Positions 23,591-61,969 of a stretch of 64,000 nt of DNA are shown here, piece by piece. Within the stretch, counting starts at the first letter, position 1, and every line of letters starts with the position of its first letter. Source of the stretch: Malacoraja senta. Lineage: Eukaryota. Below the pieces are notes generated by a model. That model was not told where the DNA came from. It did no database searches and worked only from the letters and a program-made list of their open reading frames with translations. The position numbers were made by a program, and so were the translations under genes. The DNA lies in contig JAXLNO010002302.1 in NCBI GenBank assembly GCA_038087875.1, positions 1 to 64,000 on the forward strand. Direction: 5' to 3'.

Positions 23591-23592
23591 TA

Positions 23593-25181: not shown

Positions 25182-25279
25182 TATGTCCACACTTTATCAC
25201 CATAATTCTAAAGTAAATTCCCATCATTTCCAATTGAATTTAATGTGAACACCAGAGTGAAGAGATTGCAAACATTTAC

Positions 25280-26468: not shown

Positions 26469-26470
26469 TT

Positions 26471-29620: not shown

Positions 29621-30484
29621 ACAAAGATGGGTACAAAGTGCTGGAGTAAGTCAAAGGGTCAGGCAGCATCTCTGGAGAACATGGACAGACACAAAGTGCT
29701 GGAGTAACTCAGCGGACCAGGCAGAATCGCTGGAGAAAATGGATAGGTGAACTTTTCCGGTCGGGACCCTTCTCGGTCTCTCGGTTGCCAACCCTGTCCA
29801 TGTCCCTTCCCATTCACACACTGACCTTTCTGTCCTGGGCCTCCTCCATTGTCAGAGCGAGGCCACACGCAAAGGAGGAACTGCACCTCATATTACGCTC
29901 AGGTAGTTTGCAACCCAACGTTTTAAACTTTGAATTCTCTAATTTTAAGTATCTTCTACTAACCTGCCCCCTCCACTGCCCCCCTAGGCCCATTTCTCGG
30001 CCCTGGTGGGTGAGGGGCCGATTTACCCCCACCTGCCCCAGTGAGGGGGCGGCAGAGGTTTTAGTCACGGGGCGATCGTCTTTGTGGAAATGAGCCTCAG
30101 CAGCAGAACCGCTGGTGTTTGCTCGCAGAAATCTGTGATGTATGACTGCTTATCAGTACATTGACCTGTTTGTATGTTGAGCCACGCCAAAGAAGATTTT
30201 CTGTTACGACAGACAATAAAGTTTTCTGAATCTGAATCTGAATCTGAATCTAGCTGGGACCTTCCGTGGGGCTGGTGTCTGACAGCCCCCCCCCCCCCCA
30301 TACTGCTACCGGGACAGGGGGCTCTTGGTGTGGCCCCACGGGCCTGGACCCCAGTGAAGGAGGTTGCCCCCCCCCAACACCCCGACCCCGGGGATGTGGC
30401 ACCGATTCCACGTCAGGCCCGAGGCCGGAATTCCCAGGCTGGAATGTTCACATCTGGGAGAGTGGGGAGAGATCGTCAACGTAC

Positions 30485-30808
30485 CTTCAGAAACCTTCAA
30501 TGAGATGGGGGCCGATTCAATGGGTGAATATTTTTCCGTTACTATCAACCACCAGTAGCGTCCTTCATCATTCTTCTCCAGGTTGTCGATGGTTACTGAA
30601 ACTATCCGTTGTGTTTTGTTATCAGTTATCGATGTTCTCCCTTGTCGTGGGAGATCAGTAGAAACCACAGTATAAGATGTCGAGTAATCATAACCCTTAC
30701 TCCAACGTTTCCTGTAGTCACTGTATTCCCGACCATACCGACATTCCACAGTGACCGACTGCCCCAACTCTCCCCTCACCTCCTCGGCTCCAGTTATTCC
30801 CCTAGACC
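30485..30808 (-). pseudogene. V-type Ig exon (CD300/pIgR-like), copy B, probably non-functional
   Basis: 324 nt, phase 1-1, reading GELGQSVTVECRY...DEGRYWWLIV. The F-strand Cys is replaced by Trp and the acceptor is CACGG rather than CACAG. Confidence 0.8.
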
Positions 30809-32811
30809 CCGTGGGAACATTAATGATGAAAGATCACTCACACTGCAGCAAAACAAGCTCAGTTTTAACAATAAAAAAACATGTAATTTGTGCTGTTCAG
30901 ACAGGTTCATGGTTTCGCATAGATCATGTGCAGCAAGGAACTGCAGGTGCTGGTTTACACCAAAGACAGGCAGCATTCCTGGAGAAACCATCGGGTGACA
31001 TTCCCTCACCCATTCCTTCTCTCCAGAGATGCTGCCCGTCCCGCTGAGTTACTCCAGCATTTTGTGTCTCTCTTCATTTGCATAGATCCTGTTGCACTTT
31101 AATGCTTTTCCCGCTGGTGTTAATTCCCATTTCGCCGGGATTGTTGCCCAAGTTCCAGTGAAAGCAGAACTGCTTCTGAATCTATCTGGCGCTCAGATCC
31201 TCCTTCCCTGTGGGCGTGGCTCCACGTCCCACCGCCATGTCTCGTTTATTCTATCCCTAACTTCTCATGTCAGCCACGGTTGCCTCCTACTCCCCTTAGA
31301 TTCTTTCTTCCTTTTTGGAATGAAATGATCCTGAGTCTTCCGGATTATGCCCACAAATTCCTGCCATTGCTGTTCGGTTGTGGTGGAATCCCTTGTTCGT
31401 ATTGTTCCTGAGGTGGTGGTGATCATATTTTACTTTACTTTAGTTTAGATTTGAGAGATTGACACATACGTGTCGCGCAAATGACACCCAAGTGGGACAG
31501 GCCCTTAACGTACCTGTACATCTTTGGAGTGTTTGAGGAAACCAAAGATTTCAGATCACGGGGATAACGTACAGCACCCGTGGTCGGGATCGAACCCGGA
31601 TCTCCGGCGCTACCAGTGCTGTAAGGCAGCAACTTTACCGCTGCCCCCCCCCCCCACCACCACATGGGTGGCATGTTTGAGACCCTTGTGAAGATAAAGT
31701 GAATGGTCTTTGAACATTAAATGTTTAAATGCACGTTCTGTGCCACTTTAGTGATGTGTGGGAGATGCTTCAGTTGGGAGCGCTCTTGCTCTGTGTTGGG
31801 AGATTCTTGTTTCGAATCCCAATGCAGAGATTTGAGCAAGAATCTTTCCGAGGCCACCATAGATGTACCAATCCACTTGATCTAGACAAGAGGCTCGCCC
31901 ATTGAGATGCCGGCAGATGGTCGCTAGCACTTCTTGGTTTCTTTAATGCCGTTCAGAGTCCCACAGGTTGTGTTGCTTGCCTGATGCCAGCATTAAGTAT
32001 GTCCGTTCTAGGCTGCAGAAGAACCTAGGGTAGGAGGGTGATCTCCCATGGTCCACATCAGTTCCAACCACACAGGTCGGACAGGGAAGGACATTTTGCT
32101 GGAGGATTATGAGGAACTCGGGGCAAGGCAGAACCACAAGAATGAGAATCGCCAGATTGTTAACCGAGCTTTGTGCAAATTGCTAAAAAGTAAATAGAAG
32201 CAGAGAGGTTAAGCAGTGCTCAAAGCATCTCGTGATATACCTGGATTCCTATTCCTGGGACAACCTCGTCAATGCAGGAGATGTAGGAGAAGGTTACATT
32301 GAAGAATAGGGCACGTAAAGTGACGAGGATTACACCACTGGCAAGTATTGAGGATTTAGCAGCGAAAGATTAAAAAACCCATAAAGGGGACGATTGGTTT
32401 TGAGAGAAAAATTGAGTGTCACGTCTAAGGAAAGAGTGGGATGTTGTTTGGATATATAAATGGGAAGAAAACGGCTAAGATATGCGCGGGTCGTCCAGAG
32501 AATGACGCTGGTGCATTTATATCAAGAAAGAAGAAGACAGATATGATAACACAATTGTAGAAACAAAGATGGGCACAAGGTGCTGGAGTAACTCAAAGGG
32601 TCAGGCAGAATCGCTGGAGAAAATGGATAGGTGTCCTTTTCGGGTCGGGACCCTTCTTGATCTCCCGGTTGCCAACCCTGTCCACGTCCCTTCCCATTCC
32701 CTCAAGGTCCTTTCTGTCCTGGGCCTCCTCCATTGCCAGAGTGAAGCCACACGCAAATTGGAGGAACTGCACCTCATATTACGCTCAGGTAGTTTACAAC
32801 CCAACGGTTTA

Positions 32812-33363
32812 GAAACATAGAAACATAGAAAATAGGTGCAGGAGTAGGCCATTCGGCCCCGAGCCTGCACCGCCATTCAATATGATCATGGCTGATCATC
32901 CAACTCAGTATCCTGTACCTGCCTTCTCTCCATACCACCTGATCCCTTTAGCCACAAGGGCCACTTCTAACTCCCTCTTAAATATAGCCAATGAACTGGC
33001 CTCAACTACCTTCTGTGGCAGTGAATTCCAGAGATACACCACACTCTGTGTGAAAAATGTTTTTCTCATCTCGGTCCTAAAAGATTTCCCCCTTATCCTT
33101 AAACTGTGACCCCTTGTCCTGGACTTCCCCAACATCGGGAACAATCTTCCTGCATCTAGCCTGTCCAACCCCTTAAGAATTGTGTACGGTTCTATAAGAT
33201 CCCCCCTCAGTGTTCTAAATTCTAGCGAGTACAAGCCGAGTCTATCCAGTCTTTCTTCAGATGAAAGTCCTGACATCCCAGGAATCAGTCTGGTGAACCT
33301 TCTCTGTACTCCCTCTATGGCAAGAATGTCTTTCCTCAGATTTGGAGACCAAAACTGTACGCA
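32812..33363 (-). mobile_element. CR1 3' fragment present in only one tandem unit
   Basis: ORF 32905-33276 and an (AGAAACAT)n tail; it interrupts a Penelope fragment that is continuous at about 29900. Confidence 0.85.
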
Positions 33364-33751
33364 GTTTAAACTTTGAATTCTCTAGTTTTAAGTATCTTCT
33401 CCTAACCTGCCCACTCCCCTCCCCCCTTGACTCCTTTCTCCACCCTGGTGGGCGAGGGGCCGGTTTCCCCCCACCTGCCCCAGTGAGGGGGCGGCAGAGG
33501 TTCTGGTCCCGGAGCGACCGTCTTTGGGGAAATAAGCCGTCAGCAGCCGAACCGCCGGTAGCAGCGACCTTCCGTGGGGCTGGTGTCTGACAGTCCCCCC
33601 CCCCACCCACGGGCTGGGACCCCAGTAAATGAGCCCCCCCCTCACCCCGACCCCCGGGGATGTGGCACCGAGTCACCGTCAAGACCGAGGCCGGACATTT
33701 CCAGTTTGGAATTTTCACATCTGGGAGAGTGAGGAGAGATCGTCAACGTAC

Positions 33752-34071
33752 CTTCAGAAACCTTCAATAAGATGGGGGTCGATTCAATGGGTAAATGTTT
33801 TCCCTTTTCTATCTGACACCAGTATCTTCGTCACTCTTCTCCAGGTTGTCGATGGTTACTGAAACTATCCGTTGTATTTTGTTATCAGTCATCGATGTTC
33901 TCCCTTGTCGTGGGCGATCAGTAGAAGCCACGGTCTCAGGTGACCATAAATCATAACCTTTAAGCCATCGTTTCCTGTTGTCACTGTCTTCCCGACCATA
34001 CGGACATTCCAAAATGACCGACTGCCCCAACTCTCCCCTCACCTCCTCGGCTCCAGTTATTCCCCTTGACC
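33752..34071 (-). pseudogene. V-type Ig exon (CD300/pIgR-like), copy A, 4-bp deletion frameshift
   Basis: 320 nt against 324 nt; GAAGATACTGGTGT against GAAGGATACTACTGGTGT; splice sites intact. Confidence 0.85.
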
Positions 34072-34936
34072 CTGTTGGCACATTAATGATGAAAGATCAC
34101 TCACACTGCAGCAACACAAGCTGAGGTTTAACAATAAAAAACATGTCATTTGTGCTGTTCAGACAGGTTCATGGTTTCGCATAGATCATGTGTAGCAAGG
34201 AACTGCAGGTGCTGGTTTACACCAAAGATAGACACAAAGAGCTGGAGTAACTCAGCGGGACAGGCAGCATCTCTGGAGAAACTGATGAGTGATGTTTCCT
34301 CACCCATTCCTTTTCTCCAGAAATGCTGCCTGTCCCGCTGAGTTACTCCAGCATTTTGATTCTCTCTGTTCTTTTGCATAGATCCTGTTGCACTTTCATG
34401 CTTTTCCCGCTGGTGTTAATTCCCATTTCACCGGGATTGTTCCCCAAGTTCCAGTGAAAGTAGAAGTGCTTCTGAATCTCCCTGGCGCCCAGATCCTCCT
34501 TCCCTGCGGGCGTGGTTTGACCTGAGTGGTGGTCATGTGACAGGAAGCCAACCTGTCACTCACACTGACCCACCCTGAGTTCAATCTCACTACAACCCAC
34601 TTCCCCATTGAACTGATAGAAACAAGGAACTGCAGATGCTGGTTAATACATAAAAGGACACAAAGTGCTGGAGTAACTCAACGGGTCAGGAGCTATCTCT
34701 GGAGAAAGTGGAACTCTGTGGGTGAAAAGGTTTTTCCTCATCTGAGTCCTAAATGGCCTACCCCTTATTCAGGTCTCAACCATAAACGTCACCTATCCAT
34801 GTTCTCCAGAGATGCTGCCTGATCTCCTGATTTACTCCAGCACTTTGTGCTTTACTAAAGCTGAATAGCCTGTGATGGCTCAGCAGGTCAGGCAACATCG
34901 CTGGAGAACTTGGATATGTAATGTTACAGGTAGAGA

Positions 34937-35230
34937 CATGGTGGCACAGCGGTAGAGTTGCTGCCTTACAGCGCCAGAGACCCATGTTTCATCCTGACCT
35001 CGGGTGCTGTCTGTAAGGAGTTTGCACGTTCTCCCCGTGACAGCGTGGGCTTTCTCCAGGTGCTCCAGATTCCTCCCACACTCCAAAGATGTGCAGGTTT
35101 GTATGTTAATTGGCTTTAGTTAAAATTGTAATTTGTTCGACGTGTGTTGGATAGTGTTACTGTGCCGTGTGATCGCTGGTCGGTGTGGACTTGATGGGCC
35201 AATGGGTCTGTTTCCGTGCTGTATCTCTAA
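34937..35230 (+). mobile_element. HE1/V-SINE-like SINE
   Basis: tRNA-like head plus V-domain; mirrored at 50010-50310. Confidence 0.8.
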
Positions 35231-36294
35231 AGTCACTAAAGGAAAGTCACCAAGAGATGCAACTTGACCTGCAGTGTTACTCCAGCACTTTGTGTTTTAC
35301 TAAAGCTGAATAGCCAGTTGCCTGTGGTGACTCAGCAGGTCAGGCAGCATCTGTGGAGAACATGGATAGGTGACGTTTCAAGTCAAGATCATGAGATACT
35401 GCCTGACCTACTGAGTTACGCCAGCACTTTGTGCCCCATTGAACTAAACTTCCCGGCATGTGGAGGAAGCTGGATCTGCCACTGATGTTTCAAACTCCAC
35501 GTCCACCTGGAACAATCACGAGGTGTCTTTTTCACACAAAGACTGATGGGTGTATGGAGTGTTGCTGAGACATGTTGGCCGGTGTGGGCAAGTTGGGCCT
35601 AAGGGCCTGTTTCCACACTGTATCACTCTATGTCTCTAACACATGTGAAACTCTGCAGATTCAGCTGGGGTGGAGACACATCATCAGATCAGTTCAGGTC
35701 CGCTCACAGGCCACAAGACAAATACCTTGGAGGAGAACTCAGAGGCTGGGGAAAGCACGGTGTGAAGAACAGCTCGAGCAGCAGAGCCTGTTGTTAGGCA
35801 GCTGTTTTTTCTCAGAAGGGAGAGATTACCACAACTTCTCCACATGCTAAATTGGACAGTCACTCTGGTGCTACTTCATTTGAGATGCCCGCCTGTTCCC
35901 AATGGCTGGATTTCACAGGTTTTTTCTTTGAATATGCTTAGGTTTAGGTTCAACATTTCCCATTGCAGTGCGTGGAGGGAGTGCCTAGTGGAAACATCCT
36001 CACCCCATCCACTCTGTCCAGGATTTTCACTACTTGGTAAGTTTCAATGAGGTCCACAAGGCCAGGCAAGCTGTAGGTAGTTATCTCCCTTCTCCGCAGG
36101 GAGCTAGCTGGGTGCGATTTGGATGCACACAACGCAACAACAACCACTGATGGAAGTCTCTACAGGAACTAACGAGTGTTGAGCAATTTATCATCAGTTC
36201 CCCACACAATACAGAGAGGTTCTTGGTTACAAATAATTCAAGGCGCTAGTAAATAATTCTAAAGAACTGAGCATTTTGTAAAACAATGATTTAC

Positions 36295-36391
36295 CTGATG
36301 TGAGACCAACAGCGACAAGAACCAGCAGAGCGACTGTTCCCCTGGATCTGGGCCGTTTCTGGTGGGTGAATTCTCCCTGTCCCACCGCCAT
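36295..36391 (-). CDS. Leader (signal peptide) exon, minus-strand receptor copy
   Basis: MAVGQGEFTHQKRPRSRGTVALLVLVAVGLTS-G|GTAAAT, 97 nt, phase 1. Confidence 0.75.
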
Positions 36392-36939
36392 GTCTCGGCT
36401 ACGTTGGATCGGTTTGGTCCCTGCACTGCGTTTGAGTTGTCCTCTTCCTCATTCACAACAGAAGTCAAACAGTCAATTTCAGTTTACTCAGGAAACGACT
36501 TTGCAGTTGTTCGAGACTAACTTGGTGACTCACTTGCCACCTCCCCCAGCCTCCTCACCACGGACAATGCACCTATCAAGAGTGCGCTGCAACGCTCTCC
36601 AGTTGCCTGGATTGGAGCATCTCCTCGAAGCTCTGCTTCATCCTGGTGACGTTTGCCCACTTGACTGGCGCTCTGTCCACCAACGCAAACATTCCCTTGC
36701 CCACCCCCTCCCCCAAATGCAGGCACACTGTGTCTGAACTTGTATGGGATTAGGAGGCAGAGATCAGCCATGTTTGAATGGCGGAGTAGACTCGATGGGC
36801 TGAATGGCCACATTCTACTCATGGAACGTGTGAACTTGTGATCTGTTTACCCACCTCAAAATGCGCGTCACTAATTTATCCAGCCTTCCTCAGCTTCTCA
36901 TGTGTTGAAACGTTACCCAGGAGAAATAAGACACCAATG

Positions 36940-47975: not shown

Positions 47976-48072
47976 ATGGCTGTGGGACAGGGAGAATTCA
48001 CCAACCAGAAACGTCCCAGATCCAGGGGAACAGTCGCTCTGCTGGTTGTTGTCGCTGTTGGTCTCACATCAG
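47976..48072 (+). CDS. Exon 1 (signal peptide) of a CD300/pIgR-like receptor
   Basis: MAVGQGEFTNQKRPRSRGTVALLVVVAVGLTS-G|GTAAAT: basic n-region, hydrophobic h-region, phase 1. Confidence 0.75.
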
Positions 48073-48319
48073 GTAAATCGTTGTTTTACTAAATGCTCTG
48101 TTCTTTAGAATTATTTACTGGCACCTTGAATTATTTGTAACCAAGGACTTCTCAGTACTGTGTGGGGGGCTGATGATAAATTGCTCAACACTCGTTAGTT
48201 CCTGTAGAGACTTCCATCAGCGGTTGTTGTCGTGATGTGTGCAGCCAAATTGTACACAGCTAGCTCCCTGTGGAGAAGGGAGATAACTACGTACAGCTTG
48301 CCTGGCCTTGTGGACCTCA

Positions 48320-48700
48320 TTGAAACTTACCAAATAGTGAAAGGCCTGGATAGAGTGGATAGGCCTGGGGTGAGGATGTTTCCACTAGTCGGATAGTCTA
48401 GGACCAGAGGTCGCAGCCTCAGAATTAAAGGACATTCCTTTAGGAAGGAGATGAGGAGGAATTTCTTTAGTCAGAAGGTGGTGAAACTGTGGAATTCATT
48501 GCCGCAGAAGGCTGTGGAGGCTGTCAATAGATATTTCTAAGGCAGAGATAGATAGATTCTTGATTAGGACTGGTGAAAGGAGTCCTGGGGAAAAGGCAGG
48601 AGGATTTAGTTGAGAGGGAAAGGTAGATCAGCCATGATTGAATGGAGGAGAGTAGACTTGATGGGCCAAATGACCTAATTCTGCTCCTAGTATTAATGAA
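48320..48700 (+). mobile_element. CR1 3' fragment
   Basis: RTRGRSLRIKGHSFRKEMRRNFFSQKVVKLWNSLPQK. Confidence 0.75.
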
Positions 48701-51142
48701 CTTATGATCTGTTCTTCAGAATTATTTACTAGCACCTTGAATTATTTTGAGCCACAGAGCAGACTACAGGGCTACGAACTGCTAAAGATAAAGTGCTTGC
48801 AGACTTGTTCTTTCCTGCACTAATGAATGTTGTGATGCTGTGCACAGCCAAATTGCACACAGCTAACTCCCTGTAGAAAATGACCCGACAGCTGGCCTTG
48901 TTGATTATGGGTGTAGGGGTAACTCTTGCCCCCAGAACAGAGAGTTTGCTCCACTATTCTGGTGCAAAAGTATCTCCAGGTGAACTTTCTCAGTCACTTG
49001 ACAGCAGATCAGCTAAATGCTTTACCCCTGGCATACATCTTGACTTCCTCCCTCCCTGACTGTTGGTCTGAAGAAGGGTCTCGACCCGAAAAGTCACCCA
49101 TTCCTTCTCTCCAGAGATGCCGCCTGACCCGCTGCGTTACTCCAGCATTTAGTCTATCAAAGACACACGGCACTCCCTCCACACACTGCAATGGGAAATG
49201 TTAAACCTAAACCTTAGCACATTCAAAGAAAAAACCTGTGAAAGCCAGCCATTGGGAACAGGCGGGCATCTCAAATGAGGAAGCACCAGAGAGACTGTCC
49301 AATTTAGCATTTGGAGAAATTGTGGTAATCTCTCCCTTCTGAGAAAAACCAGCTGCCTTACAACAGACTCTGCTGCTCGAGCTGTTCTTCACACCGTGCT
49401 TTCCCTAGCCTCTGAGATCTCCTTCAAGGCATTTGTCTTGTGGCTTGTGAGCGGACCTGGACTGATCTGATGATGTGTCTCCACCCCAGCTCCTGAATCA
49501 GAGTCATAGAGTGGTACAGTGTAGAAACAGGCCCTTCAGCCCAACTTGCCCACACCGGCCAACATGTCTCAGCAACACTAGTCCCACCTGTCCATGTTTG
49601 GTCCATGTCCCTTCAAACCTGTCCTACCCATGTACCTGTCTAACTGTTTCTTAAATGATGGGATAGTCCCTGCCTCAACTACCTCATCTGGCAGCTTGTT
49701 CCATACACCCACCACCCTTTGTGTGAAAAAGACACCTCAGGATTATTCCAGGTGGACGTGGATTTTGAAACATCAGTGGCAGATCCAGCTTCCTACACAG
49801 GCCGGGAAGTTTAGTTCAATTGGGCACAAAGTGCTGGCGTAACTCAGTAGGTCAGGCAGTATCTCATGGTCTTGACTTGGAACGTCACCTATCCATGTTC
49901 TCCACAGATGCTGCCTGACCTACTGAGTCACCACAGGCAACTGGCAATTCAGCTTTAGTAAAACACAAAGTGCTGGAGTAACACTGCAGGTCAAGCTGCA
50001 TCACTTGGTGACTTTAGAGATACAGCACGGAAACTGGCCCTTTGGCCCATCAAGTCCACGCCGACCATCTATCACACGGCATACGAACACTATCCTACTC
50101 ACTAGGAGCTATTTACAATTTTTACTAAAGTCAATTAACCTACAAACCTGCACGTCTTTGGAGTGTGGGAGGAAACTGGAGCAGCTGGAGAAAACCCACG
50201 CTGTCACGGGGAGAATGTACAAACTCCGTAAAGACAGCACCCGAGGTCAGGATGAAACATGGGTCTCTGGCGCTGTAAAGCAGCAATTCTACCCCTGTGC
50301 CACTGTGTCACCATGTCTCTACCCGTAACATTACCTATCCATGTTCCCGAGCGATGTTGCCTGACCCGCTGAGCCATCACAAGCAGCTAGCTATTCAGCT
50401 TTAGTAAAGCACAAAGTGCTGGAGTAAATCAGCAGGACAGACAGCATCTCTGGAGATCATGGATAGGTGACGTTTAGGTTGAGACCTGAATGAGGGGTAG
50501 GCCATTGAGGACTCAGATGAGGAAAAACCTTTTCACCCAGAGAGTTCCACTTTCTCCAGAGATAGTTCCTGTCCCGTTGAGTTCCTTGTTTCTACTAGTT
50601 CAATGGGGAAGTAAGTGGGTAGTAGTGAGATTGAACACAGGGTGGGTCAGAGTGAGAGACAGGTTGGCTTCCTGTCACATGACCACCACTCAGGTCAAGC
50701 CACGCCCACAGGGAAGGAGGATCTGGGCGCCAGGTAGATTCAGAAGCACTTCTGCTTTCACTGGAACTTGGGGAACAATCCCGGTGAAATAGGAATTAAC
50801 ACCAGCGGGGAAAGCATTAAAGTGCAACAGGATCTATGCAAAAGAAGAGAGACACAAAATGCTGGAGCAACTCAGCGGGACGGGCAGCATTTCTGGAGAG
50901 AAGGAATGGGTGAGGGAACATCACCCGTCGGTTTCTCCAGAGATGCTGCCTGTCCCGCTGAGTTACTCCAGCTCTTTGCGTCTATCTTTGGTGCAAACCA
51001 GCACCTGCAGTTCCTTGCTACACATGAACTATGCGAATCCATGAACCTGTCTGAACAGCACAAATGACATGTTTTTTTATTGTTAAACCTCAGCTTGTGT
51101 TGCTGCACTGTGAGTGATCTTTCATCATTAATGTGCCCACAG

Positions 51143-51466
51143 GGTCAAGGGGAATAACTGGACCCAAGGAGATGAGGGGAGAGTTGGGGCAGTCGGTCAC
51201 TGTGGAATGTCAGTATGATCGGGAATACAGTGACAACAGGAAGCTATGGAGTAAAGGTGATTATTTCCTGAGATCTTCTATTGTGGTTTCTACTGATCAC
51301 CCACGACAAGCGAGAACATCGATAACTGATAACAAAACACAACTGATCGTTTCAGTAACCATCATCAACCTGGTGAAGAGTGATGAAGGATACTACTGGT
51401 GTGTGATAGTAAAGGGAATATTTTCAAACAATGAAAGGACCTCCATCTCATTGAAGGTTTCTGAAG
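51143..51466 (+). CDS. Exon 2, intact V-type Ig domain (CD300/CMRF35/pIgR-like)
   Basis: CCCACAG|...GAAG|GTACG, 324 nt, reading GELGQSVTVECQY...KLW...SVTIINLVKSDEGYYWC...ISLKVSE. Confidence 0.9.
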
Positions 51467-52795
51467 GTACGTTGACGATCTCTCCTCACTCTCTCAGATG
51501 TGAAAATTCCAGCCTGGGAATTCCCGGCCTTGGTCCTGATAGGGACTCGGTGCCGCTTCCCCGGTTATCCGTGGGGGGGGGGTGAGGAGGCTTGGGGCAG
51601 GTGAGAGGGGAGTAGGGGGGATGCGCAGCAAGGGGCCACACCAAGAGCCCACTGTCCCCGGAGCAGTGTGTGTGTGTGTGTGTGGGAGGGGGGGAGCTCA
51701 TCAACGGGGACCGGCGGTTCTGCTGCTGACGGCTCATTTCCCCAAAGTCGATCTCTCCGGGACAAGAACCTCTGGTGCCCCCTCACTGGGGCAGGGGTGG
51801 GACCGCCCCCTCACCCTCTCCCCCTGCCCATCACTGTCACACCCACCACACACACAACATCTGAAGAAGGGTCCCAACCCAATACATCGTCTATTCATTC
51901 CTTCCACAGATGCTGCCTAACCTGCTGAGTTACTCCAGCACTTTGTGTTTTGCTCAAGATTCCAGCACCTGCAGTTCATTGTGTCTCACAAACTTTGGTG
52001 ATTCATGAGCTCAGTTAATGTTGTCGTTTGTACCGACGTACAGGGAAAAGCTTTTACCATGTTTCCAATGAGGGCCAAATCATTGGCTATTTTTAAGGTG
52101 GAGATTGACAGGTTCTCCATTAGTACGGGTGTCAAGATGTATGGGGAGAAGGCAGAATGGGGTTGAGAGGGAGAGATAGTTCAGCCATGATTGAATGGCA
52201 GAGTAGACTCAATGGGCCAAATGGCGTAAGTCTGTCCCTATCACATGAACATGAACGAAGAATCCTTGTGAGATGAGCGATATAGACTTTAGACTAAGTT
52301 ACACAAACTGTACAAGATGAAATACTCAACGGGTCGTGCACTATCTGTGGAGAGTGAACGAGAGTTAATGTTTCAGGTAGATACCTCCAACCAGATTGCA
52401 TTATTTCCAATTCAGTCCGTAATGCAAATAGTCCATGGATCCTCCCGCTCCCAAGTTGTTCTCCAACATAGAAGAAATGTGCCTAACTCTAGCAGCAGGC
52501 AGATAACACAGCCTGTGGGACTCTGAAGGGCATGAAAGGAGTCCCTGAATGGTTGCGACCATCCTGTGGCATCTTAATGCGTGAGCCTCCTGTCTAGACC
52601 AAGGGCTTGGTCCATCTATGGTGGCCTCAGAAGGAACCTTGCTCAAATCTCTGGATTGGGATTTGAACCCAGGAATCTCCCACACAGAGCAAGAGCGCTC
52701 CCAACTGAAGCATCTCCCACACCTCACTAAAGTGGCACAGAATGTGCTTTCAGACATTTAATGTTCAAAAACTTCATTCACTTTATCTCGACAAG

Positions 52796-52937
52796 TTTCT
52801 CAAACACGCCGCCCGGATATGGTCATCACCACCTTTGCAACAATAAGCACAAGGGCGCTGACCACCCTGCCTCAAGATGCACCAACCACCGAGGCAGCAA
52901 GTTTCACTGAGGCTTCTGGTTCAATACTTCCAAACAG
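52796..52937 (+). CDS. Exon 3, Thr/Ser-rich stalk
   Basis: VSQTRRPDMVITTFATISTRALTTLPQDAPTTEAASFTEASGSILPN-AG|GTTAGT. The paralogous acceptor at 52815-52816 is GG; an in-frame AG lies at 52794-52795. Confidence 0.6.
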
Positions 52938-52994
52938 GTTAGTAACTCAAAGAGCCAACTCAGCCTCACCTGAGAACAAATTAATTAAGTTCAA

Positions 52995-53270
52995 TTCAGC
53001 TCAGTTAAAAGATACAGCGCGGAAATGGACCCTTTGGCCTACCGAGTCCGCTCTGAGCAGCGATCTCCCCATACACCAGTTCTGTTCTACATACTGGGGG
53101 CAATTTACTACAAACCCGCGCATCTTTGGAATATGGGAGGACACTGGAGAACCCAGAGTAAACTCTTGCAATCACAGGGAGAATGTACAAACTCTGCACT
53201 GACAGCACCGGTAGTCAGGATCGAACCCGCGTCTCCTGCGCTGTGAGGCAGCAACTCTACCGCTGTGCCG
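52995..53270 (-). mobile_element. HE1/V-SINE-like SINE
   Basis: Reverse-complement tRNA-like head at about 53270. Confidence 0.75.
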
Positions 53271-53549
53271 ACATCTCAATGGGCGAGCCTCATGTCTAGA
53301 TCAAGGGGCTTGGCCCATCTATGGTCGCCTAGGAAGGATCCTTGTTCAAATCTCTGGATTGGGATTCGAACCAGGATTCTCCCCACACAGAGCAAGAGCT
53401 CTCCCAACTGCAGCATATCCCACACATCACTAAAGTGGCACAGAACGTGCTTTTAAACATTTAATGTTCAAAGACTTCATTCGCTTTATCTTCACAAGGG
53501 TCTCAAACATGTCACCCAGATATCCTCACCACTTTGGTGCGGGTGGGGG

Positions 53550-54015
53550 CATGGTGGTGCAGCGGTAGAGTTGCTGCCTTACAACGCTTGTAGCAGGGTG
53601 GGAGATTGCAACCTTCACGTGGTCCGCCCTGTTTCGACAAATGCATTCAACCCAGTGTGCAGAATTAAATCAGATCAAATAGAACAATTTGTCCAACAAC
53701 TTTAGGCTGTGCATGCCATACGCAAGAAGAGGAAGAATGCTTGTAGCGCCGGAGACCCAGGTTCGATCCCGACTACGGGTGCTGCCTGTACGGAGTTTGT
53801 ACGTTATCCCCGTGATCGTGTGGGTTTTCTCAGAGATCTTTGGTTTCCTCCAACGCTCCAAAGACGTACAGGTTTGTAAGTAGATTGGCTTGGCGTATGT
53901 GTCAATTGCCCCTAGTGTGTGTAGGCTCGTGTTAGTGTGCGTGGATTGCTGGTCGGTGCGGACTTCATGGGCCGTAGGGCCAGTTTCCGCGTTATATCTC
54001 AAAACTAAACTAAAC
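53550..54015 (+). mobile_element. HE1/V-SINE-like SINE interrupted by a 144-bp retroposon (53595-53738)
   Basis: 9-bp TSD GCTTGTAGC (53586-53594 and 53739-53747); the insert ends in a GAAGA-like tail. Confidence 0.75.
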
Positions 54016-54024
54016 TGAATTAAA

Positions 54025-54114
54025 ATATGGTCACCACCACCTCAGGAACCACCACACCCACTCTGCCTCCGGAAGCATCGACCACCAGGGTCTCCTGGTT
54101 CATCGCCTCGACAC
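54025..54114 (+). pseudogene. Second, disabled stalk-exon paralog
   Basis: MVTTTSGTTTPTLPPEASTTR...CAG|GTCAGT; the acceptor is displaced by a SINE and there is a 17-nt deletion relative to 26394-26468. Confidence 0.55.
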
Positions 54115-55130
54115 AGGTCAGTGACTCAAAGGACCAACTCAGCCTTGCACAGCTTCACCACAGTGTCAACGGCTGAAGTGAGCAGCCCATGATTAACAAG
54201 AAGGATAAATACAATCAGCGAGTTTACTGGCGATCGCCGTGGGTTATTATTACTTGCTATATAACATCAGATATACCCTCCCTCACACATTGTTCAAAAA
54301 TCATCTTTGTTCCAATCTCCACAGCCTGATCTTCCTCTCCTGCACTGTCCTGGAAGAGTACAGACCAGGTGGACTTTGCTACATCGGGAGAGGGCAGCAT
54401 TCCTGCTGCCTGACCCGCTGAGTTACTCCAGCATTTTGTGACCATCTACAACCTTTCTCAGTTGTGAAAGTTTGAGTAGAGGGGAAACGTATCCTGTTGT
54501 CGGTAAAATCAGTCCCCATACTTCGAGAAAGCGTGGCTGATCACATTCCAGTCCATTGATAAATACTCCTTGGCCCTGACTAAAGTCCCTCTGTCCTTAG
54601 TACACACAGTGGCCCTACCATTGCGAATGTCTACCCTTATTTGATACCAAAAACAAATAACTTCACACTTATCACGGTTCAATACCTGCTGGCATTGCTC
54701 TGCCCCACATACCAGTTGCTTCTTTTCCCTCTGTGGTCTATGATTATCGTACTATCCAAAATGATACGATTTTGGTGTAATCTGTAAACTCGTTAATCAT
54801 ACTTCCAACATTAACATCTAAGGCCGGCAAATGGGACTAGTGTAGATAAGGGCATCTTGGTCGGCGTGGGGAAATTGGGTCCAAGGACATGTTTTCGTGC
54901 TCTATGTCTGACCACCAACATGAACATCTAAGTTGTTAATGTATGTAGTCATGGAACACCTCCAAGGAATGGGTGCATGTTGCGATATAAACATCTCACC
55001 AATGTCTACGCCACAACCTTGGATCACACTGAATGATCCCGTGTGCAATATGATGGGGGGGGGGGGGAAATCCCACCGTTGATCTGTGATAACTCTGTGT
55101 GGAAGTAATAATATTTCCTTGGATTTCCAG

Positions 55131-55238
55131 GGACGTCGTGTTGAATGTTCGCCGTGTTTTGGGTGTGTTACGCTGGGTACTCTTTGGAGTTCTGCTTCTC
55201 TTCCCGGTTTCCATCAGCTGTGTGACAACTTTTAAAAG
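55131..55238 (+). CDS. Exon 4, transmembrane segment with an Arg
   Basis: TTTCCAG|G...AAAAG|GTAAAA, 108 nt, phase 2-2, reading RDVVLNVRRVLGVLRWVLFGVLLLFPVSISCVTTFK. Confidence 0.85.
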
Positions 55239-56205
55239 GTAAAAGTTTGCAATCTCTTCACTCTGGTGTTCACATTAAATTCAATTGGAAATGATGGGAA
55301 TTTACTTTAGAATTATGGAGATAAAGTGTGGACATACAGTGCCCTCCATAATGTTTGGGACAAAGACCCTTCATTTATTTATTTGCCTCTGTATTCCACA
55401 ATTTGAGATTTGTAATAGAAAAAAATCAGATGTGGTGAAAGTGCACATGGACAGATTTTATTAAAGGGTATTTTTATACATTTTGGTTTCAGCATGTAGA
55501 AATTACAGCTGTGTTTATACACAGTCCCCCCCATTTCAGGGCACCATAATGTTTTGAACTCATTGCTTCACAGGTGTATGTAATTGCTCAGGTGTGCTTA
55601 ATTGCCTCCTTAATGCAGGGATAAGAAAGCTCTCAGCACCTAGTCTTTCCTCCGGTCTTTCCATCACCTTTGGAAACTTTCATTGCTGTTTATCAACATG
55701 AGGACCAAAGTTGTGCCAATGAAAGTCAAAGAAGCCATTATGAGACTGAGAAACAAGAATAAAACTGTTAGAAACATCAGCCAAACATTAGGCTTACGAA
55801 AATCAACTGTTTGGAACATCATTAAGCAGTACGAGAGCACTGGTGAGCTTACTAATCGCAAAGGGACTGGCAGGCCAAGGTAGACCTCCACAGCTGATGA
55901 CAGAAGAATTGTCTCTATAATAAAGAAGAAAAAAAAAACACCTGTCCGACAGATCAGAAACACTCTTCAGGAGTCAGGTGTGGATTTGTCAATGACCACT
56001 GTACACAGAAGACTTCATGAACAGAAATACAGAGGCTACACTGCAAGATGCAAACCACTGGTTAGCCACAACAAATAGGATGGCCAGGTTACAGTTTGCC
56101 ACAAAGTACTTAACAGAGCAACCACAGTTCTGGAAAAGGATCTTGTGGACAGATGAGACAAAGATTAACATATCAGATTAATGGCAATTGCAAAGTATGG
56201 AGAAG

Positions 56206-56876
56206 TCACAAGTCAAGTCAAGTCACATTTATTTATATAGCACATTTAAAAAACAACTCTCGTTGGCCATAGTGCTTTACATTTGTTATACGAATAGTAT
56301 AAACAAACAAACTACATACATATATATATATATATATAGCCCTCGCTCAGAGGATGTCAAGAAAGGCTTCGGAGTACAGATACGTTTTTAGTCTTGACTT
56401 AAAGGAGTCGATGGAGGGGACAGTTCTGATGGGAAGAGGGATGCTGTTCCACAGTCTAGGAGCTGCAACCGCAAAGGCGCGGTTGCCCCTGAGCTTATGC
56501 ATAGACCGCGGGATATTCAGCCACCCCAAGTCGGCCGATCTGAGGGACCTGGAGGTGGAGTGGTGGGTGAGAAGACTTTTAATGTAGGCGGGGGCAAGCC
56601 CATTGAGGGCTTTGTAGGCATAGAGGAGGATCTTGAAATTTATACGGAACCGCACAGGGAGCCAGTGGAGAGAGGCCTGGATCGGGGTGATGTGGTTCCC
56701 TTTTCGGGTGCCCGTCAGGATTCTCGCTGCGCCGTTTTGGACCAGTTGCAGGCAGGACAGGGAAGATTGGCTGATGCCAGTGTAAAGGGAGTTGCAGTAA
56801 TCTTGGCGGGAGGAGATAAATGTGTGGATGATCTTTTCGAGGTCATCAAACTGGAGGAATTGTTTTATTTTAGCTT
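56206..56876 (-). mobile_element. 5'-truncated L2 LINE
   Basis: FRINFKILLYAYKALNGLAPAYI...RAFAVAAPRLWNSIP...FKSRLKTYLY; (TTGAC)n tail; probable TSD AGAAG. Confidence 0.85.
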
Positions 56877-58298
56877 AGAAGAGAAGGAACTGCCCAAGAT
56901 CCAAAGCTTTCCACCTCATCTGTGAAACACGGTGGTGGGGGTGTTATGGCCTGGGCATGTATGGCTGCTGAAGGTACTGACTCACTTATCTTCATTGATG
57001 ATACAACAGCTGATGGTAGTAGCAAAATGAATTCTGAAATGTATAGACACATCCTATCTGCTCAAGTTCAAACAAATGCCTCAAAACCCATAGGCCGGCA
57101 GTTCATTCTACAGCAAGACAATGATTCCAAACATATTGAAAAAGCAACAAAGGAATTTTTCAAAGCTAAAAAATGGTCAATTCTCACCAACTTTACTATG
57201 GGAATCATTCAAAGCATTTATTAGAGGATCTATAATCTCATACCAAGCTTTTCTAAATAAAAAGAATAAGAAAGAACAAAGGCAGTTAGAAGAACGAATT
57301 AGAGAATTGGAATTAGATAATGCTAAAGAGCCAACTATAGATAAACATAATAAAATAACAATAATGAAATTTAAATTAAACAAAATATTATCAGCAAATT
57401 TCATTAGATTATTCCAAATTACAAAAGAGGAAAATTTTGAATTTGGTGATAAACCACACAAACCTTTGGCTCGACAACTGAAAAAACGGGAAAAGGATCA
57501 CACGATTTAAAAGATTAAATCAGACAAAGGGGAATTGTTAACACTACCTAAGGATATTAATAAAAGATTTGTTCAATTTTATCAAAACTTATACACATCT
57601 AAAGCGTTAGCAGATAATACCAAAGTTATAGAGTTCCTGGATAATTGTAATCTGCCAAAACTCAATTTGATCGAACAAGAGGAATTAGGTGCACAAATCT
57701 CAACTAAGGAAATAGAAGAAACAATAAATACATTAAAGAATGGAAAAACACCAGGACCAGATGGTTTTAGTAATGAATTTTATAAAAGATTCTACGAGAT
57801 AATTACACCATGGCTACATAAAATGTATACATATGCTTTTAATGAACATACACTTCCAGAAACATTAGCGGAATCAACGATTACACTTATACCTAAAAAA
57901 GGTAAAGATTTAGAAGACCCGGGTTCTTATAGAGCTATTGCGCTGTTAAATACAGATCAAAAAATATTTGTGAAAACATTAGGTATAAGATTAAGTAATT
58001 ATGTTAGTAAATTAATAAATCCGGATCAAACAGGATTTATACCCAAGCGATACTCATGCAATAATCTGAGACGTCTGTTTAATATAATGCACTCACATAA
58101 AACCGAAGAACAAGACTTATCAATTATTTCACTGGACGCAGAAAAAGCATTCGATCAAGTGGAATGGGATTACCTTGTCAAAGTATTGCAAAAATTTCAA
58201 ATGGGAGAGAATTTTATCGCTTGGGTAAAATTATTATATGATAGGCCTACTGCCAGAATATTAACTAATAATATTTTGTCCCCGAAATTTCAATTTTC

Positions 58299-58705
58299 TT
58301 TTTTTTTTTTTTTAATTTTTATTTATTAGAAGTACATTACATCACAGCCACATACATTAATACTCGTCATTTATATCTTCTTACAATTAATGTACTCCCT
58401 TTATTTATTTTTTTACACTAAAGAAAGAAAAGATTGAAAGAGAGAAGAAAGTGAAGGAAAAAGTGCAAGTGTAGAAAAGTGTAGAAAATGTAACAACAAA
58501 AAAGGACGAAGACCCTATGAGAGCGAAATTAAAAACAAAAAGAAAAAGAGTTAAGAAATAGGCCCTAAGAAAAGAAAAGAGAAAGAGAAAAAAAGAAAAA
58601 CAAATGTTTTTTTTTGAGCATCACGTAAATAGGACATACCAACTCTTCAACTATCATCCCCCCTTACCCGACCTCAATTTTTTATTTTTTTAAAGTACTT
58701 TTGCA
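58299..58705 (-). mobile_element. Antisense L1 3'-UTR fragment inside the L1
   Basis: Perfect 18-bp TSD CCCGAAATTTCAATTTTC (58281-58298 and 58706-58723); matches the reverse complement of 42500-42850. Confidence 0.88.
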
Positions 58706-60744
58706 CCCGAAATTTCAATTTTCAAGGGGAAATAGACAGGGATGTTCATTATCACCTCTGCTATTTGCTCTTGTAATAGAACCGTTAGCGGAAAGTAGTA
58801 GAATACATCCGAACATCCATGGTTATAATACAAAATACTCAAATAATAAAATATCATTATATGCAGATGATGTACTACTATATATCACAAAATCACAAAT
58901 CAGTATACCAAATATATTAAATTTAATAGAGGAATTTGGATCCTTTTTAGGATATAGAATAAATTGGAATAAAAGTGAAATTATGACGATTAAACCGCAA
59001 GAACCAACACACTTGTTAAAATTCCCTTTTAAAATCGCTTCAGAAAAATTTAAATATTTGGGAATTAAAATTACTTGAAAATATAAATCTTTATTTAATG
59101 CAAACTATATGCCCTTACTCAATAAACTAAACATACTGATTAAATTCTGGAAAACTCTCCCGATGTCTCTTATAGGCCGAATAAATGCTATAAAAATGAT
59201 CTTTTTAGCACAAATTTTATATCTATTCCAGTCAATACCGATATACTTACCAACATTTTTTTTTAAATTGGATGCTGATATTACAAACTTTATATGGGAC
59301 TATAAATCCCACAGAATCCAAAGAAAACATTTGTGCAAACCTAAAGAATCTGGCAGATTGTCACTCCCTAATTTTTTATATTATTACTGGGCCACAAATG
59401 TCAAAAATATGATTCACCTGTTGGACAATTCGGCCCAGCAGGTGGATTGTATAGTAATGGAGAGAGGGTTGTTCCCCTTTTAACATAGGAGCGATCCTTC
59501 ACTCACCAACAAAAATGAAGAATACAATATAAAGTAAAAACCCAATTATTCATAGTACAATTAGAATTTGGAAACAAATAAAATTAACTTTAAAATTAAG
59601 AAATCTATCGCTTCTCCCACCTATAATGAATAACCCTTCTTTTAAACCTTCTGATAGATACATCTTTTACAAATTGGGATAGATTAGGAATTAAAACGTT
59701 TGGAGATATGTATGATAATGGAAGTTTTTTTAACATTTCACCAACTACAACTTAAATACAACTTGAGTAGTAATCAATATTTTAAATATTTTCAAATACG
59801 TGACTATTTGAAAAAATATACACGAGAATATCAAAATATGTCTCCAGACCTATTCGATGAGATAATGAATATAAAAGCGGAATCAGCTAATTTAATATCA
59901 TACCTGTATAATACCATTCTAAACAGAAATTCCATCATCTGATAGGATTAGAAGAGACTAGGAACAAGAACTAGCTATAAAAATCTCGAAAGAGAGTTGG
60001 GATAAACACCTGTTATATGTGCATAAATGCTCGATTAACGTAAGACATACTCTAATTCAATTTAACATTTTACATAGATTATACTATTCAAAAGCTAAAT
60101 TAAGTAAATTTTACCCAAATACCTCTTCTATCTGTGATAAATGTCTAACCCAAGAAGCAACTAGAGCACCTTCTTTTGTTTTTTGTATAAAAATCCAAAA
60201 TTTTGGAATGAAATTTTTGAAATTTTCTCGAAATTATTTAAAATAAAACTGAAACCGAATGCAGAACTGATTATTTTTGGAACAATAGAAGCAAGTTTGG
60301 AGCTGACTTCGTTTCAAAGGAGCCTTCTTAATTATGGCTTAATAACGGCAAAAAAAGTATACTGAAATTTTGGAAAAATGCTCCCACGCCAACAACAAAA
60401 ATTTGGATTTCTAATATGTTGGAATTGTTACACCTAGAAGATATGAGATTCCTCTTAGCAGCTAAACCAGACCAATTCCAAAAGATTTGGTCTCCATTTA
60501 TCGACTTATTACAAACATAGGGTGCAACAAAATGTTGATAATAAATGGTTTCAGGGCCTGGCGAGGGGAGAGTAAAGATATGAAGTAGGTACATCCCTTT
60601 CATATTGTCCTATCTTATCTTATTTTTTCTTTTTTCTTTTTCCTGCTTTTGGTTTTCCCCTTTTTAAAAACTATTTCTTGTGGTTTACGTCCATATGGGT
60701 GTTCCTGGACCACTCTTTCAATCACTCACTTACTATCTTTACTA

Positions 60745-60990
60745 GGTACACAAAAATGCTGGAGAAACTCAGCGGGTGCAGCAGCATCTATGGAGCGAAG
60801 GAAATAGGTAACGTTTCGGGCCGAAACCCTTCTTCAGACTGATAGGGGGTGGGGAGAAGAAAGGAAAAAAGGAAAAGCAGGAGGAGGAGCCCGAGGGCTG
60901 GGGGAGGGGCGGAGACAACCAGATGGCTGATGAAGGGGAGGGGACAGCCAGGGCTAGCAGAATTGGGAGAATTCAACGTTCAGGCCACCA
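60745..60990 (-). mobile_element. 5'-truncated Penelope copy (pseudo-LTR with hammerhead-like core)
   Basis: Reverse complement of about 3190-3432; 13-bp TSD ACTATC(T/A)TTACTA (60732-60744 and 60991-61003). Confidence 0.85.
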
Positions 60991-61899
60991 ACTATCATTA
61001 CTAACTCTTTCTATCCTTTCTCTTATTAAAGTTTAAAATAAGAAGTGGTACAAGAAAAGTATAACCTTACGTTTATTGGAGATCACTGTAATGTACAATA
61101 CTTCTAATTTAAAAAAAAATTAAAAAAAAATAAACAACAAAAAAAAGGTCAAATCTTGAGTGGCCAAGTCATTCTGAACCCAATTGAGCATGCCTTTTAC
61201 CTGCTGAAGAGAAAACTGAAGGGGACTCGCCCCCAAAACAAGCGTAAGCTAAAGATGGCTGCAATACAGGCCTGGCAGAGCATCACCAGAGAAGACACCC
61301 AGCAACTGGTGATGTCCATGAATCGCAGACTTCAAGCAGTGTCCCAAACATTATGGTGCCCTGAAATGGGGGGGACTATGTATAAATACTGCTGTAATTT
61401 CTACATGGTGAAACCAAAATGTATAAAAATGGTCTTTATTAATATTTGACAATGAGCACTTTAACCACATGTGCTTTTTTTCTATTTCAAATCTCAAATT
61501 GTGGAGTACAGAGGCAAATAAATAAATGATGGGTCTTTGTCCCAAACATTATGGTGGGCACTGTGGCCAACCAAGTCCGCGACGTCCAATGATCACCCCG
61601 TACACTCGCACTATCCTACACACGAGGGACAATTTACAATTATACAGAAGCCAATTAACCTACTAAACTACACGTCTTTGGATTGTGGTAAGAAACCGGA
61701 GCACCCGGATAAAACCCACGCTGTCACAGGCAGAACATACAAACTCCGTACAGACAGCACCCGTAGTCATGATCAAACCCGGGTCTCTGGCGCTGTAAGG
61801 CAGCAACTCTACCGCTGTGCCACTGTGCCGCCCTGGGTCATTTCCTCGGGTAAAATTTGATGGTAGAGATTATAAAGTGCATTTTAATTATTATTCAAG

Positions 61900-61969
61900 G
61901 AAAAAACCAGCCGAGACCTTGAAGATGAGGTCGGCAGTGGTGGAGGAAGGAGAGGAACAGCGCCGGTGA
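61900..61969 (+). CDS. Exon 5, short cytoplasmic tail without tyrosine
   Basis: TTATTCAAG|G then KKPAETLKMRSAVVEEGEEQRR*; phase 2 fits exon 4; frame and stop are conserved in the inverted copy. Confidence 0.55.

Follow-up and report, generated by a model that had tools for sequence, protein, structure and literature searches.

A predicted five-exon CD300-type receptor gene and its decayed inverted neighbour in Malacoraja senta

The five-exon gene and its surroundings

The window, the whole 64-kb stretch of Malacoraja senta DNA analysed here (contig JAXLNO010002302.1), holds two receptor units that stand head to head, a gene with an open frame and a decayed inverted copy; the rest consists of transposon remains and one C2H2 zinc-finger exon. 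The features are as follows.

47976..48072, + strand: exon 1, with the start codon, a charged N-terminal stretch and the hydrophobic signal core VALLVVVAVGL; ends in phase 1
51143..51466, + strand: exon 2, a complete V-set Ig domain; its copy-specific bases include the codons for Ile-Ile-Asn-Leu-Val
52796..52937, + strand: exon 3, a Thr/Ser/Pro-rich stalk of 48 aa (40% S+T+P); phase 1 in, phase 2 out
55131..55238, + strand: exon 4, with a juxtamembrane RR, the transmembrane (TM) helix with Arg202 (GVLRWVLFGVLLLFPVSISCV) and the beginning of the KRKK stop-transfer
55471..61565, no strand assigned: an insertion of about 6.1 kb in intron 4, derived from transposons
57511-58326, within the intron 4 insertion: reverse-transcriptase ORF (RVT_1, E 1.5e-16)
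61900..61969, + strand: exon 5, the remainder of the 24-aa cytoplasmic tail, with the acidic end EEGEEQRR, no tyrosine and a TGA stop
21963..36933, - strand: inverted paralogous unit, a pseudogene, with 87-93% nucleotide identity
36391-36295, - strand: exon 1 of the inverted unit, which appears intact
34071-33752, - strand: V exon of the inverted unit, with a 4-bp deletion that leads to a stop
30808-30485, - strand: V exon of the inverted unit, which has GG in place of the acceptor AG and Trp instead of the second canonical Cys
25387-25280, - strand: TM exon of the inverted unit, present
23247-23178, - strand: tail exon of the inverted unit, present

Five exons of 97, 324, 142, 108 and 70 nt join in phases 1, 1, 2 and 2 into a coding sequence of 741 nt (246 aa plus stop) with no internal stops, and the positions, phases and length given in the original prediction were all confirmed on the sequence. 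Its wording of the splice sites as canonical or near-canonical was right in the first term and too modest in the second, as every donor has GT and every acceptor AG. An Amblyraja radiata protein annotated as 'CMRF35-like molecule 3' (P0154, 246 aa) is identical to the predicted protein at 198 of 246 positions (80.5%), end to end and with zero gaps. Its gene (CM021389.1, about 34.50 Mb) has exons of the same sizes, phases and splice contexts, including the weaker-looking acceptors acaag of exon 3 and ttcaag of exon 5, and the flanks of exon 1 match as well. Identity between both genes is 93.8% in exon 1, 88% in exon 3, 96.3% in exon 4 and 92.9% in exon 5. Since exon 2 also matches the Pfam V-set profile (E 3.9e-13), this gap-free identity to an independently annotated skate protein with identical exon sizes and splice-site contexts indicates that the exon model is not due to chance. 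In this sense, what had been described as a hidden 5-exon gene is, as judged from its sequence, an intact gene whose product is a small CD300-type immune receptor of the cell surface.

The term hidden holds for the raw window only. The exact model protein was absent from the protein collection searched, which leaves this copy without independent annotation; as a kind of gene it is not hidden, as genes of the same structure carry the annotation 'CMRF35-like molecule 3' or 'pIgR-like' in A. radiata, Leucoraja erinacea and Rhinoraja longicauda. These skate relatives also bear out the supposed chondrichthyan origin of the DNA. Between exon 1 and the stalk there is a single V exon, with no second one found within 47.4-63.2 kb, and no ITIM-type exons were found in the 64-kb window. 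The possibility that exon 3 was a false exon derived from a transposon was rejected, as this exon is used in the annotated A. radiata gene. Its 5' part does recur at 53272-53532, but as an old local duplication common to A. radiata.

The last intron is long, with exons 4 and 5 lying 6.7 kb apart, because of the insertion of about 6.1 kb, which neither the A. radiata units nor the inverted copy contain; positions 18332 and 18337 of one A. radiata locus (L001) align to window positions 55470 and 61566, respectively. No intact stalk exon was found in the inverted unit.

The V domain and the membrane layout

Exon 2 keeps the canonical Cys22 and Cys86, the Trp and the DEGYYWC motif, and every invariant residue of the family is present. 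The affinity to the CD300/CMRF35/pIgR/TREM group, proposed from such a pattern in the original prediction, is supported by the V-set match, by sequence comparison with the PDB and by Foldseek, the closest matches being CD300f/CD300lf and then pIgR domains. Per single domain, the best PDB sequence match was CD300f with 55.8 bits, and pIgR D5 reached 35.4 bits. The AF2 model of the V domain has a pLDDT of 96.1, and the Foldseek top 10 for this predicted fold consisted of CD300lf/CD300f throughout (TM about 0.9, rmsd 1.6-1.9). Teleost pIgR (5f1s) also matches the predicted fold with a TM of 0.86, and human pIgR D1 and D5 are among the matches as well.

By its sequence, the model is without the second (C-C') disulfide that is typical of CD300/pIgR/TREM domains. 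At the two columns of this cysteine pair, where 83 and 73 of 97 family domains have Cys, it carries Ser/Ser. The aligned skate relatives share this trait: Ser/Ser is also found in six of the seven skate domains aligned, and A. radiata P0154 retains the first Cys only.

Hydropathy has its maximum at residues 197-222 and denotes a single TM segment besides the signal core. Together with the composition of the stalk and the V-set match, it agrees with the domain order first proposed, that is leader, V-type Ig domain, Thr-rich stalk, TM and short tail. The 246-aa product would be a type I membrane protein with a stalk of O-glycosylation type. The TM core reads LRWVLFG, where Leu replaces the leading Trp of a W-x3-RW-x-LF motif (VRRVLGVLRWVLFG). 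The full motif is present in P0002 of L. erinacea, in P0154 of A. radiata and in P0157, and activating forms from skates, stingrays, an electric ray, sharks and sturgeons conserve it. In other members of the family the TM is uncharged and the tail bears ITIM-like tyrosine motifs (VxYSxV); the number of V domains per protein varies from 1 to 5, and the 3' ends vary too. The Arg lies near the outer leaflet, which we take to be closer to FcR-gamma-coupled receptors than to the Lys/Glu of CD300 TMs. With one V domain, an arginine in the TM and a tail of 24 aa that has no tyrosine, the predicted protein has the layout of an activating CD300-type form and not of a transcytosis receptor such as pIgR.

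The lowest whole-chain E-values in the PDB belong to pIgR, and NCBI calls several of the relatives 'polymeric immunoglobulin receptor-like', some of which carry three to five tandem V domains. These observations could point to a cartilaginous-fish pIgR or a piece of one, that is a transcytosis receptor for polymeric IgM. However, the pIgR E-value is low because it is summed over five domains, and its best single domain gives 35 bits versus 56 bits for CD300f. Every one of the ten best structural matches is CD300f/lf, the gene has a single V exon between exon 1 and the stalk, its TM carries an arginine and its tail of 24 aa without tyrosine is far below the long cytoplasmic tail of pIgR type. 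On single-domain score, structure, domain count, TM and tail we reject a pIgR, which seems extremely improbable. The likeness to pIgR in the original prediction stands at the level of the domain, but not for the architecture or for the best single-domain match, which is CD300f.

Relatives, transcripts and divergence of the V exons

P0154 has the leader, the stalk, the RW transmembrane motif and the EEG.EQRR tail in common with the window protein; the V domain differs most, above all in the BC, C'C'' and FG loops. L. erinacea P0002 has stalk, TM and tail as in the window protein. The A. radiata loci compared match the window at 96% at most. They also differ in arrangement: the A. radiata stretch has tandem and convergent copies, whereas the window copy stands head to head with a dead one and carries the insertion in intron 4. 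The L. erinacea (XP_055510911.1) and R. longicauda 'pIgR-like' models have several V domains, whereas the window gene has one.

The read runs compared came from species other than the source and none is recorded as RNA, some being putative RNA. Among four runs compared with 47900-53100, one contig from a related species joins exon 1 directly to exon 2; exon 3 had no cover in the putative RNA runs compared with this region. For the TM-tail stretch of the paralogue (22900-26600), three putative RNA runs gave unspliced contigs only, and all contigs over its TM and tail exons are unspliced or genomic. Junctions 2-3, 3-4 and 4-5 turned up in none of the runs and the exon 1-2 junction only in the contig of a related species, so that expression of the window gene itself is putative. 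This contig extends 482 nt upstream of the exon-1 region, which may mean a long or spliced 5' UTR.

These upstream nucleotides, the variation of V-domain number and 3' ends among relatives, and stalk-sequence relics at 53272-53532 and 54024-54120 would also be consistent with a larger or otherwise spliced gene, with extra V or stalk exons or another last exon, as in the 226-aa isoform-like P0155 of A. radiata. We regard this as quite unlikely. A second V exon is absent from 47.4-63.2 kb, the stalk relics are without acceptor or with stops, and P0154 has precisely this five-exon form.

Among 11 V exons of the family, we found that identity is 85.8% in the exons and 95.9% in the flanking introns, the exon being lower in 55 of 55 pairs. 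The mean pairwise difference is 14.2% in V exons versus 4.1% in flanking introns, so the exons diverge about three times faster. Family V exons have a dN of 0.173 and a dS of 0.086 (dN/dS about 2; bootstrap 95% interval of dN-dS 0.032-0.144), in a set of intact V exons only and with the reservation that mixed relaxed constraint would also inflate dN/dS above 1. V exons that change faster than introns, with dN above dS, constitute the pattern expected of receptors in an arms race.

The neighbouring pseudogene and the transposon insertion of 6.1 kb imply that the intact frame could be that of a recently silenced copy. The gene would then be a silent or recently dead member of a decaying receptor array, its frame kept by youth and not by selection. 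In agreement, there is no doubt that the adjoining inverted copy is dead, transposon fragments are dense across the window, no RNA support for the window copy itself was found, and the paralogues are only 5-13% apart in nucleotides, so little time has elapsed. Nevertheless, none of the eight splice sites has been lost, and the start, the stop, the two canonical cysteines and the full set of invariant family residues are retained, while the neighbour of similar age has at least three lesions. In the TM exon, identity to the annotated A. radiata gene is 96%, and the AF2 fold is confident. On balance, a silent copy appears unlikely, though less so than a larger gene.

Interpretation and comparison with known receptors

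The gene is probably an intact, single-copy-looking member of a batoid CD300-like multigene family ('CMRF35-like molecule' or 'pIgR-like') that encodes a predicted receptor of activating type. By analogy with mammalian CD300b/c/d/e, TREM, NKp44, Fc-alpha-RI, NKp46 and similar receptors, it may be displayed on the leucocyte surface and bind its ligand through the variable BC, C'C'' and FG loops, the ligand possibly being a lipid or a pathogen or self surface molecule caught in an arms race. The buried Arg would pair with the acidic residue of an ITAM adaptor dimer (FcR-gamma, CD3-zeta or DAP12 type) and thereby give an activating signal, which ITIM-bearing members of the family encoded elsewhere in the genome might counterbalance. 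Adaptor partner and ligand are here pure inference. The idea of an FcR-gamma-type adaptor has to be weighed against Akula et al. 2014 (PMC4016189), who, on the data of that time, reported that homologues of pIgR, FcR and FcR-gamma were not found in cartilaginous fish.

To a family with annotated members in several skates, rays and sharks, such a gene contributes a further intact activating receptor together with a dead neighbouring copy. As a real yet ordinary member of a known fast-evolving family, it changes little alone and its value is comparative: it documents the loss, in skate members, of the second disulfide of the CD300/pIgR fold, and an activating RW transmembrane module common to sharks through sturgeons. 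It also bears on the rise of paired innate Ig receptors before bony fish. A bolder proposal, which we put forward tentatively and consider rather unlikely, is that a skate CD300-like branch dropped the stabilising C-C' disulfide and turned to germline-diversified recognition. Its V exons would be hypervariable in three CDR-like loops, with introns and frameworks homogenised by exchange between copies, and would be shuffled into receptors of one to five domains on one conserved stem of FcR-gamma type. If so, the gene would be a single cassette within an innate array of 'variable receptor' type, in a lineage that is said to be without pIgR and classical FcRs, and the multi-V members could then be the receptors for Ig or pathogens that cartilaginous fish are missing.

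Regarding known systems, pIgR has V domains of the same subtype as the window protein. It differs in having two to five tandem V-like domains, an uncharged TM and a long tail with sorting and transcytosis signals, whereas the window protein has one V domain, a TM Arg and 24 aa of tail. According to PMC3031540, the modular domain immune-type receptors (MDIR) of Cannon et al. 2006 constitute, in the clearnose skate, an activating and inhibitory multigene family whose Ig domains resemble CD300, TREM/TLT and pIgR; MDIR2-4 are GenBank ABC86796.1, ABC86797.1 and ABC86799.1. No MDIR-named proteins were present among the family relatives retrieved from the protein collection. The family of the window gene is probably MDIR-type, as far as the description of MDIR1-4 in that source allows the comparison, and the modular domain use it describes fits the variants with one to five V exons of the skate relatives.

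The CD300f/CD300lf structures (PDB 2nms, 1zox and 5ffl) have the same V fold, with a TM of 0.9 and 32% identity to the window V domain; the C-C' disulfide typical of CD300/pIgR/TREM domains is the point at which the window protein departs from them. The likeness to CD300 is one of sequence, fold and layout, and does not imply orthology of the locus to the mammalian CD300 cluster. Mammalian activating CD300 receptors (CD300b/c/d/e) combine, as here, a V-set domain, a mucin-like stalk, a charged TM residue and a short tail without signalling motif, and mammalian CD300, like the skate relatives, is a paired family of activating and inhibitory receptors.

Gene model and encoded protein

The five exons of the original prediction were recovered in the sequence with phases 1, 1, 2 and 2. 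The splice sites, claimed to be canonical or near-canonical, have GT at all donors and AG at all acceptors, and the joined coding sequence of 741 nt comprises 246 codons plus TGA without an internal stop. In the sequence around the start codon, positions -3 and +4 are both G.

Exons of the receptor gene, with identity to the corresponding exon of the gene of P0154 (Amblyraja radiata 'CMRF35-like molecule 3')
47976-48072, +: exon 1, 97 nt, signal core VALLVVVAVGL; 93.8%
51143-51466, +: exon 2, 324 nt, V-set Ig domain; 88.9%
52796-52937, +: exon 3, 142 nt, stalk; 88.0%
55131-55238, +: exon 4, 108 nt, TM with Arg202; 96.3%
61900-61969, +: exon 5, 70 nt, tail and TGA; 92.9%

P0154, found in the second protein search, also has 246 aa and is identical to the model at 198 of 246 positions with zero gaps. 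When the exon borders of its gene (CM021389.1, locus L001) were solved against its protein, the exons measured 97, 324, 142, 108 and 70 nt as in the window, and the splice-site contexts matched almost base for base, the weak-looking acceptors 'acaag' (exon 3) and 'ttcaag' (exon 5) being kept in both. Also, the Leucoraja erinacea protein P0002 carries three V domains followed by a stalk, TM and tail that match the model. This shared exon structure, together with the stalk, TM and tail match, shows by homology that the five-exon model is correct. The exact 246-aa protein was absent from the protein collection searched, and identity between the window and the compared A. radiata stretches was 96% at most, so the window comes either from a different section of the array or from a different skate.

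The proposed order of leader, V-type Ig domain, Thr-rich stalk, TM and short tail is upheld by hydropathy, composition and domain search. Exon 2 matches Pfam PF07686 (V-set) with E 3.9e-13 over profile positions 1-108 of 109, the stalk has 48 residues (Ser+Thr+Pro 40%), and a single hydrophobic segment, residues 197-222, includes Arg202. The cytoplasmic tail of 24 residues, KRKKPAETLKMRSAVVEEGEEQRR, is tyrosine-free.

Regarding transcripts, a search of sequencing runs yielded none from the source species and none labelled as RNA. From a related species, an 844-nt contig of a putative RNA run covers 47907-48069 and resumes directly at 51140-51338 with ~90% identity, fitting the 48072/51143 junction because the three-base offset corresponds to a shared CAG. 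In the same contig the exon-1 region is preceded by 482 nt, and therefore either the 5' UTR is long or an upstream non-coding exon lies outside the five-exon model. Exon 3 had zero cover in the putative RNA runs, and contigs over the TM and tail exons of the inverted paralogue extend into introns and are thus genomic or unspliced. Junctions 2-3, 3-4 and 4-5 are predicted from annotated relatives, their one source of support. Expression of the window gene is unproven, with one exon 1-2 junction contig from a related species.

Inverted duplication and surrounding sequence

The gene belongs to an inverted segmental duplication: it makes up the plus-strand arm (47.4-63.2 kb), and the minus-strand arm (36.9-22.0 kb) is dead. 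The two arms are 87-93% identical, introns included.

Other features of the locus
21963-36933, -: inverted paralogue, a pseudogene with two V exons, both with lesions
34071-33752, -: its first V exon; 4 bp deleted immediately ahead of the YWC motif, stop soon after
30808-30485, -: its second V exon; acceptor AG changed to GG, second canonical Cys to Trp
55471-61565: transposon-rich insertion of 6.1 kb in intron 4; reverse-transcriptase ORF 57511-58326, Tc1-like remains
53272-53532: stalk-exon relic in intron 3, duplicating the intron 2/exon 3 boundary, 86% to 52570-52829
54024-54120: stalk-exon relic in intron 3, shortened exon 3' part; GT donor, stop upstream
46408-47485, 62262-63379, 22072-22897: receptor-unit 3' flank repeats, 84-88% identity
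63361-64000, +: beginning of a C2H2 zinc-finger array, 4.6 copies of an 84-nt period, 82%; Pfam zf-C2H2 and zf-H2C2_2; continues past the window end

No intact stalk exon is left in the pseudogene, which alone would break its frame; exon 1 and the TM and tail exons are still recognisable and well kept. Neither the paralogue nor the A. radiata units have the intron 4 insertion, and this intron is 6.1 kb longer in the live copy because transposon DNA was inserted. The relic at 53272-53532 is also found in A. radiata and is therefore old. A second copy of the 3' flank lies just upstream of the promoter region, as would be expected had the unit once sat head-to-tail in a tandem array, as in A. radiata.

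The remainder of the window consists of transposon debris and, at the 3' end, the zinc-finger array, probably an exon of a KZNF-type gene adjoining the receptor unit. Retroelement remains at 654-3219 give a weak reverse-transcriptase match (below the Pfam cut-off) and then a faint GIY-YIG match, the domain pair of Penelope-like elements. A minisatellite of 40-nt (or 77-nt) units occupies 8976-9589 (~16 copies, 92% identity), beside long C/T-rich low-complexity tracts (4830-5745 and 6987-7430).

Evolution of the V exons

The gene itself offers little new; the most interesting by-product is the family-level pattern of V-exon evolution. At least eight family V exons lie within ~180 kb of A. radiata CM021389.1 (34.49-34.67 Mb), in units of ~10.7 kb, and the introns beside them resemble one another much more closely (~96%) than the exons do (~86%). 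Eleven V exons, taken from the window and from three A. radiata loci, were compared in pairs: identity averaged 85.8% in the V exon versus 95.9% in 247 nt of adjoining intron, and in 55 of 55 pairs the exon was the less conserved. For the nine intact V exons, the Nei-Gojobori method gave a mean dN of 0.173 and dS of 0.086 (ratio 2.0), with a codon-bootstrap 95% interval for dN-dS of 0.032-0.144; the difference was zero or negative in 0.3% of replicates. Changes concentrate in the BC, C'C'' and FG loops. As dS is raised in the loops too (0.25 versus 0.03 in the framework), the pattern suggests retention of old loop variants on frameworks that were homogenised, no less than new mutation.

Family relatives and comparison with known receptors

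With the V domain as query, 1.84 billion representative proteins yielded 1598 matches at E <= 0.001. The best were cartilaginous-fish NCBI models annotated as 'polymeric immunoglobulin receptor-like' or 'CMRF35-like molecule N', from Leucoraja erinacea, Narcine bancroftii, Hemitrygon akajei, Pristis pectinata, Heterodontus francisci and Scyliorhinus canicula. The relatives are of two types: activating, with a common TM motif W-x3-RW-x-LF and a short tail, and inhibitory, with an uncharged TM and tails bearing VxYSxV-type motifs. No inhibitory-type exon (uncharged TM, ITIM tail) was found in the 64-kb window. Skates, stingrays, an electric ray, several sharks and sturgeons all have the activating motif, which is therefore old and constrained. 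Two sturgeon (Acipenser) 'pIgR-like' proteins, P0028 and P0106, carry it as the shark and skate receptors do, so the signalling module is older than the divergence between cartilaginous and bony fish.

The protein has the layout of an activating paired receptor, and by analogy it probably works like an activating CD300/TREM-type receptor. FcR-gamma-coupled receptors such as Fc-alpha-RI, NKp46, GPVI and OSCAR typically have an 'L-R-hydrophobic' arrangement close to the outer leaflet. As in mammalian systems, Arg202, six residues into the helix from outside, would pair with an aspartate in a dimeric ITAM adaptor, and the variable loops would bind ligand. According to the titles of PDB structures matched by Foldseek, ligands of CD300/TIM relatives are phospholipids and ceramide, and that of CD300lf also norovirus capsid. 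No PIGR, FcR-gamma, FcRL or classical FcR homologues were reported for cartilaginous fish in 2014-era data (Akula et al. 2014, PMC4016189).

The predicted affinity to the CD300/CMRF35/pIgR/TREM group held in both PDB sequence matches and Foldseek, with CD300f closest. In the whole-chain sequence search pIgR has the lowest E (1e-25), a sum over five domains; its best single domain (D5) scores 35.4 bits versus 55.8 bits (E 4e-14) for single-domain CD300f/CLM-1 chains, which are followed by CD300c, CD300a, NKp44, TIM and TREM. Foldseek, run against the PDB with a very confident AlphaFold2 V-domain model (mean pLDDT 96.1, alignment of 97 family domains), placed only mouse CD300lf and human CD300f among its ten best matches (TM 0.88-0.92, rmsd 1.6-1.9, identity 29-33%); teleost pIgR, pIgR D1, CD300a, CD300c and TREM rank lower. 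In sum, the original observation is confirmed and its interpretation supported.

A pIgR identity was rejected, since pIgR differs in V-domain number, TM and tail; the gene is a further member of an already annotated batoid CD300-like family. It has in common with mammalian CD300 the fold, layout and paired activating/inhibitory logic, but misses the hallmark second disulfide: both C-C' positions are Ser, as in 6 of 7 skate domains shown in the alignment (P0154 retains the first Cys only), whereas across the 97 domains the Cys after the conserved Trp is present in 83 and its C' strand partner in 73. The closest described skate family is that of the modular domain immune-type receptors (MDIR) of the clearnose skate, and from their description (PMC3031540) the window gene likely belongs to it.
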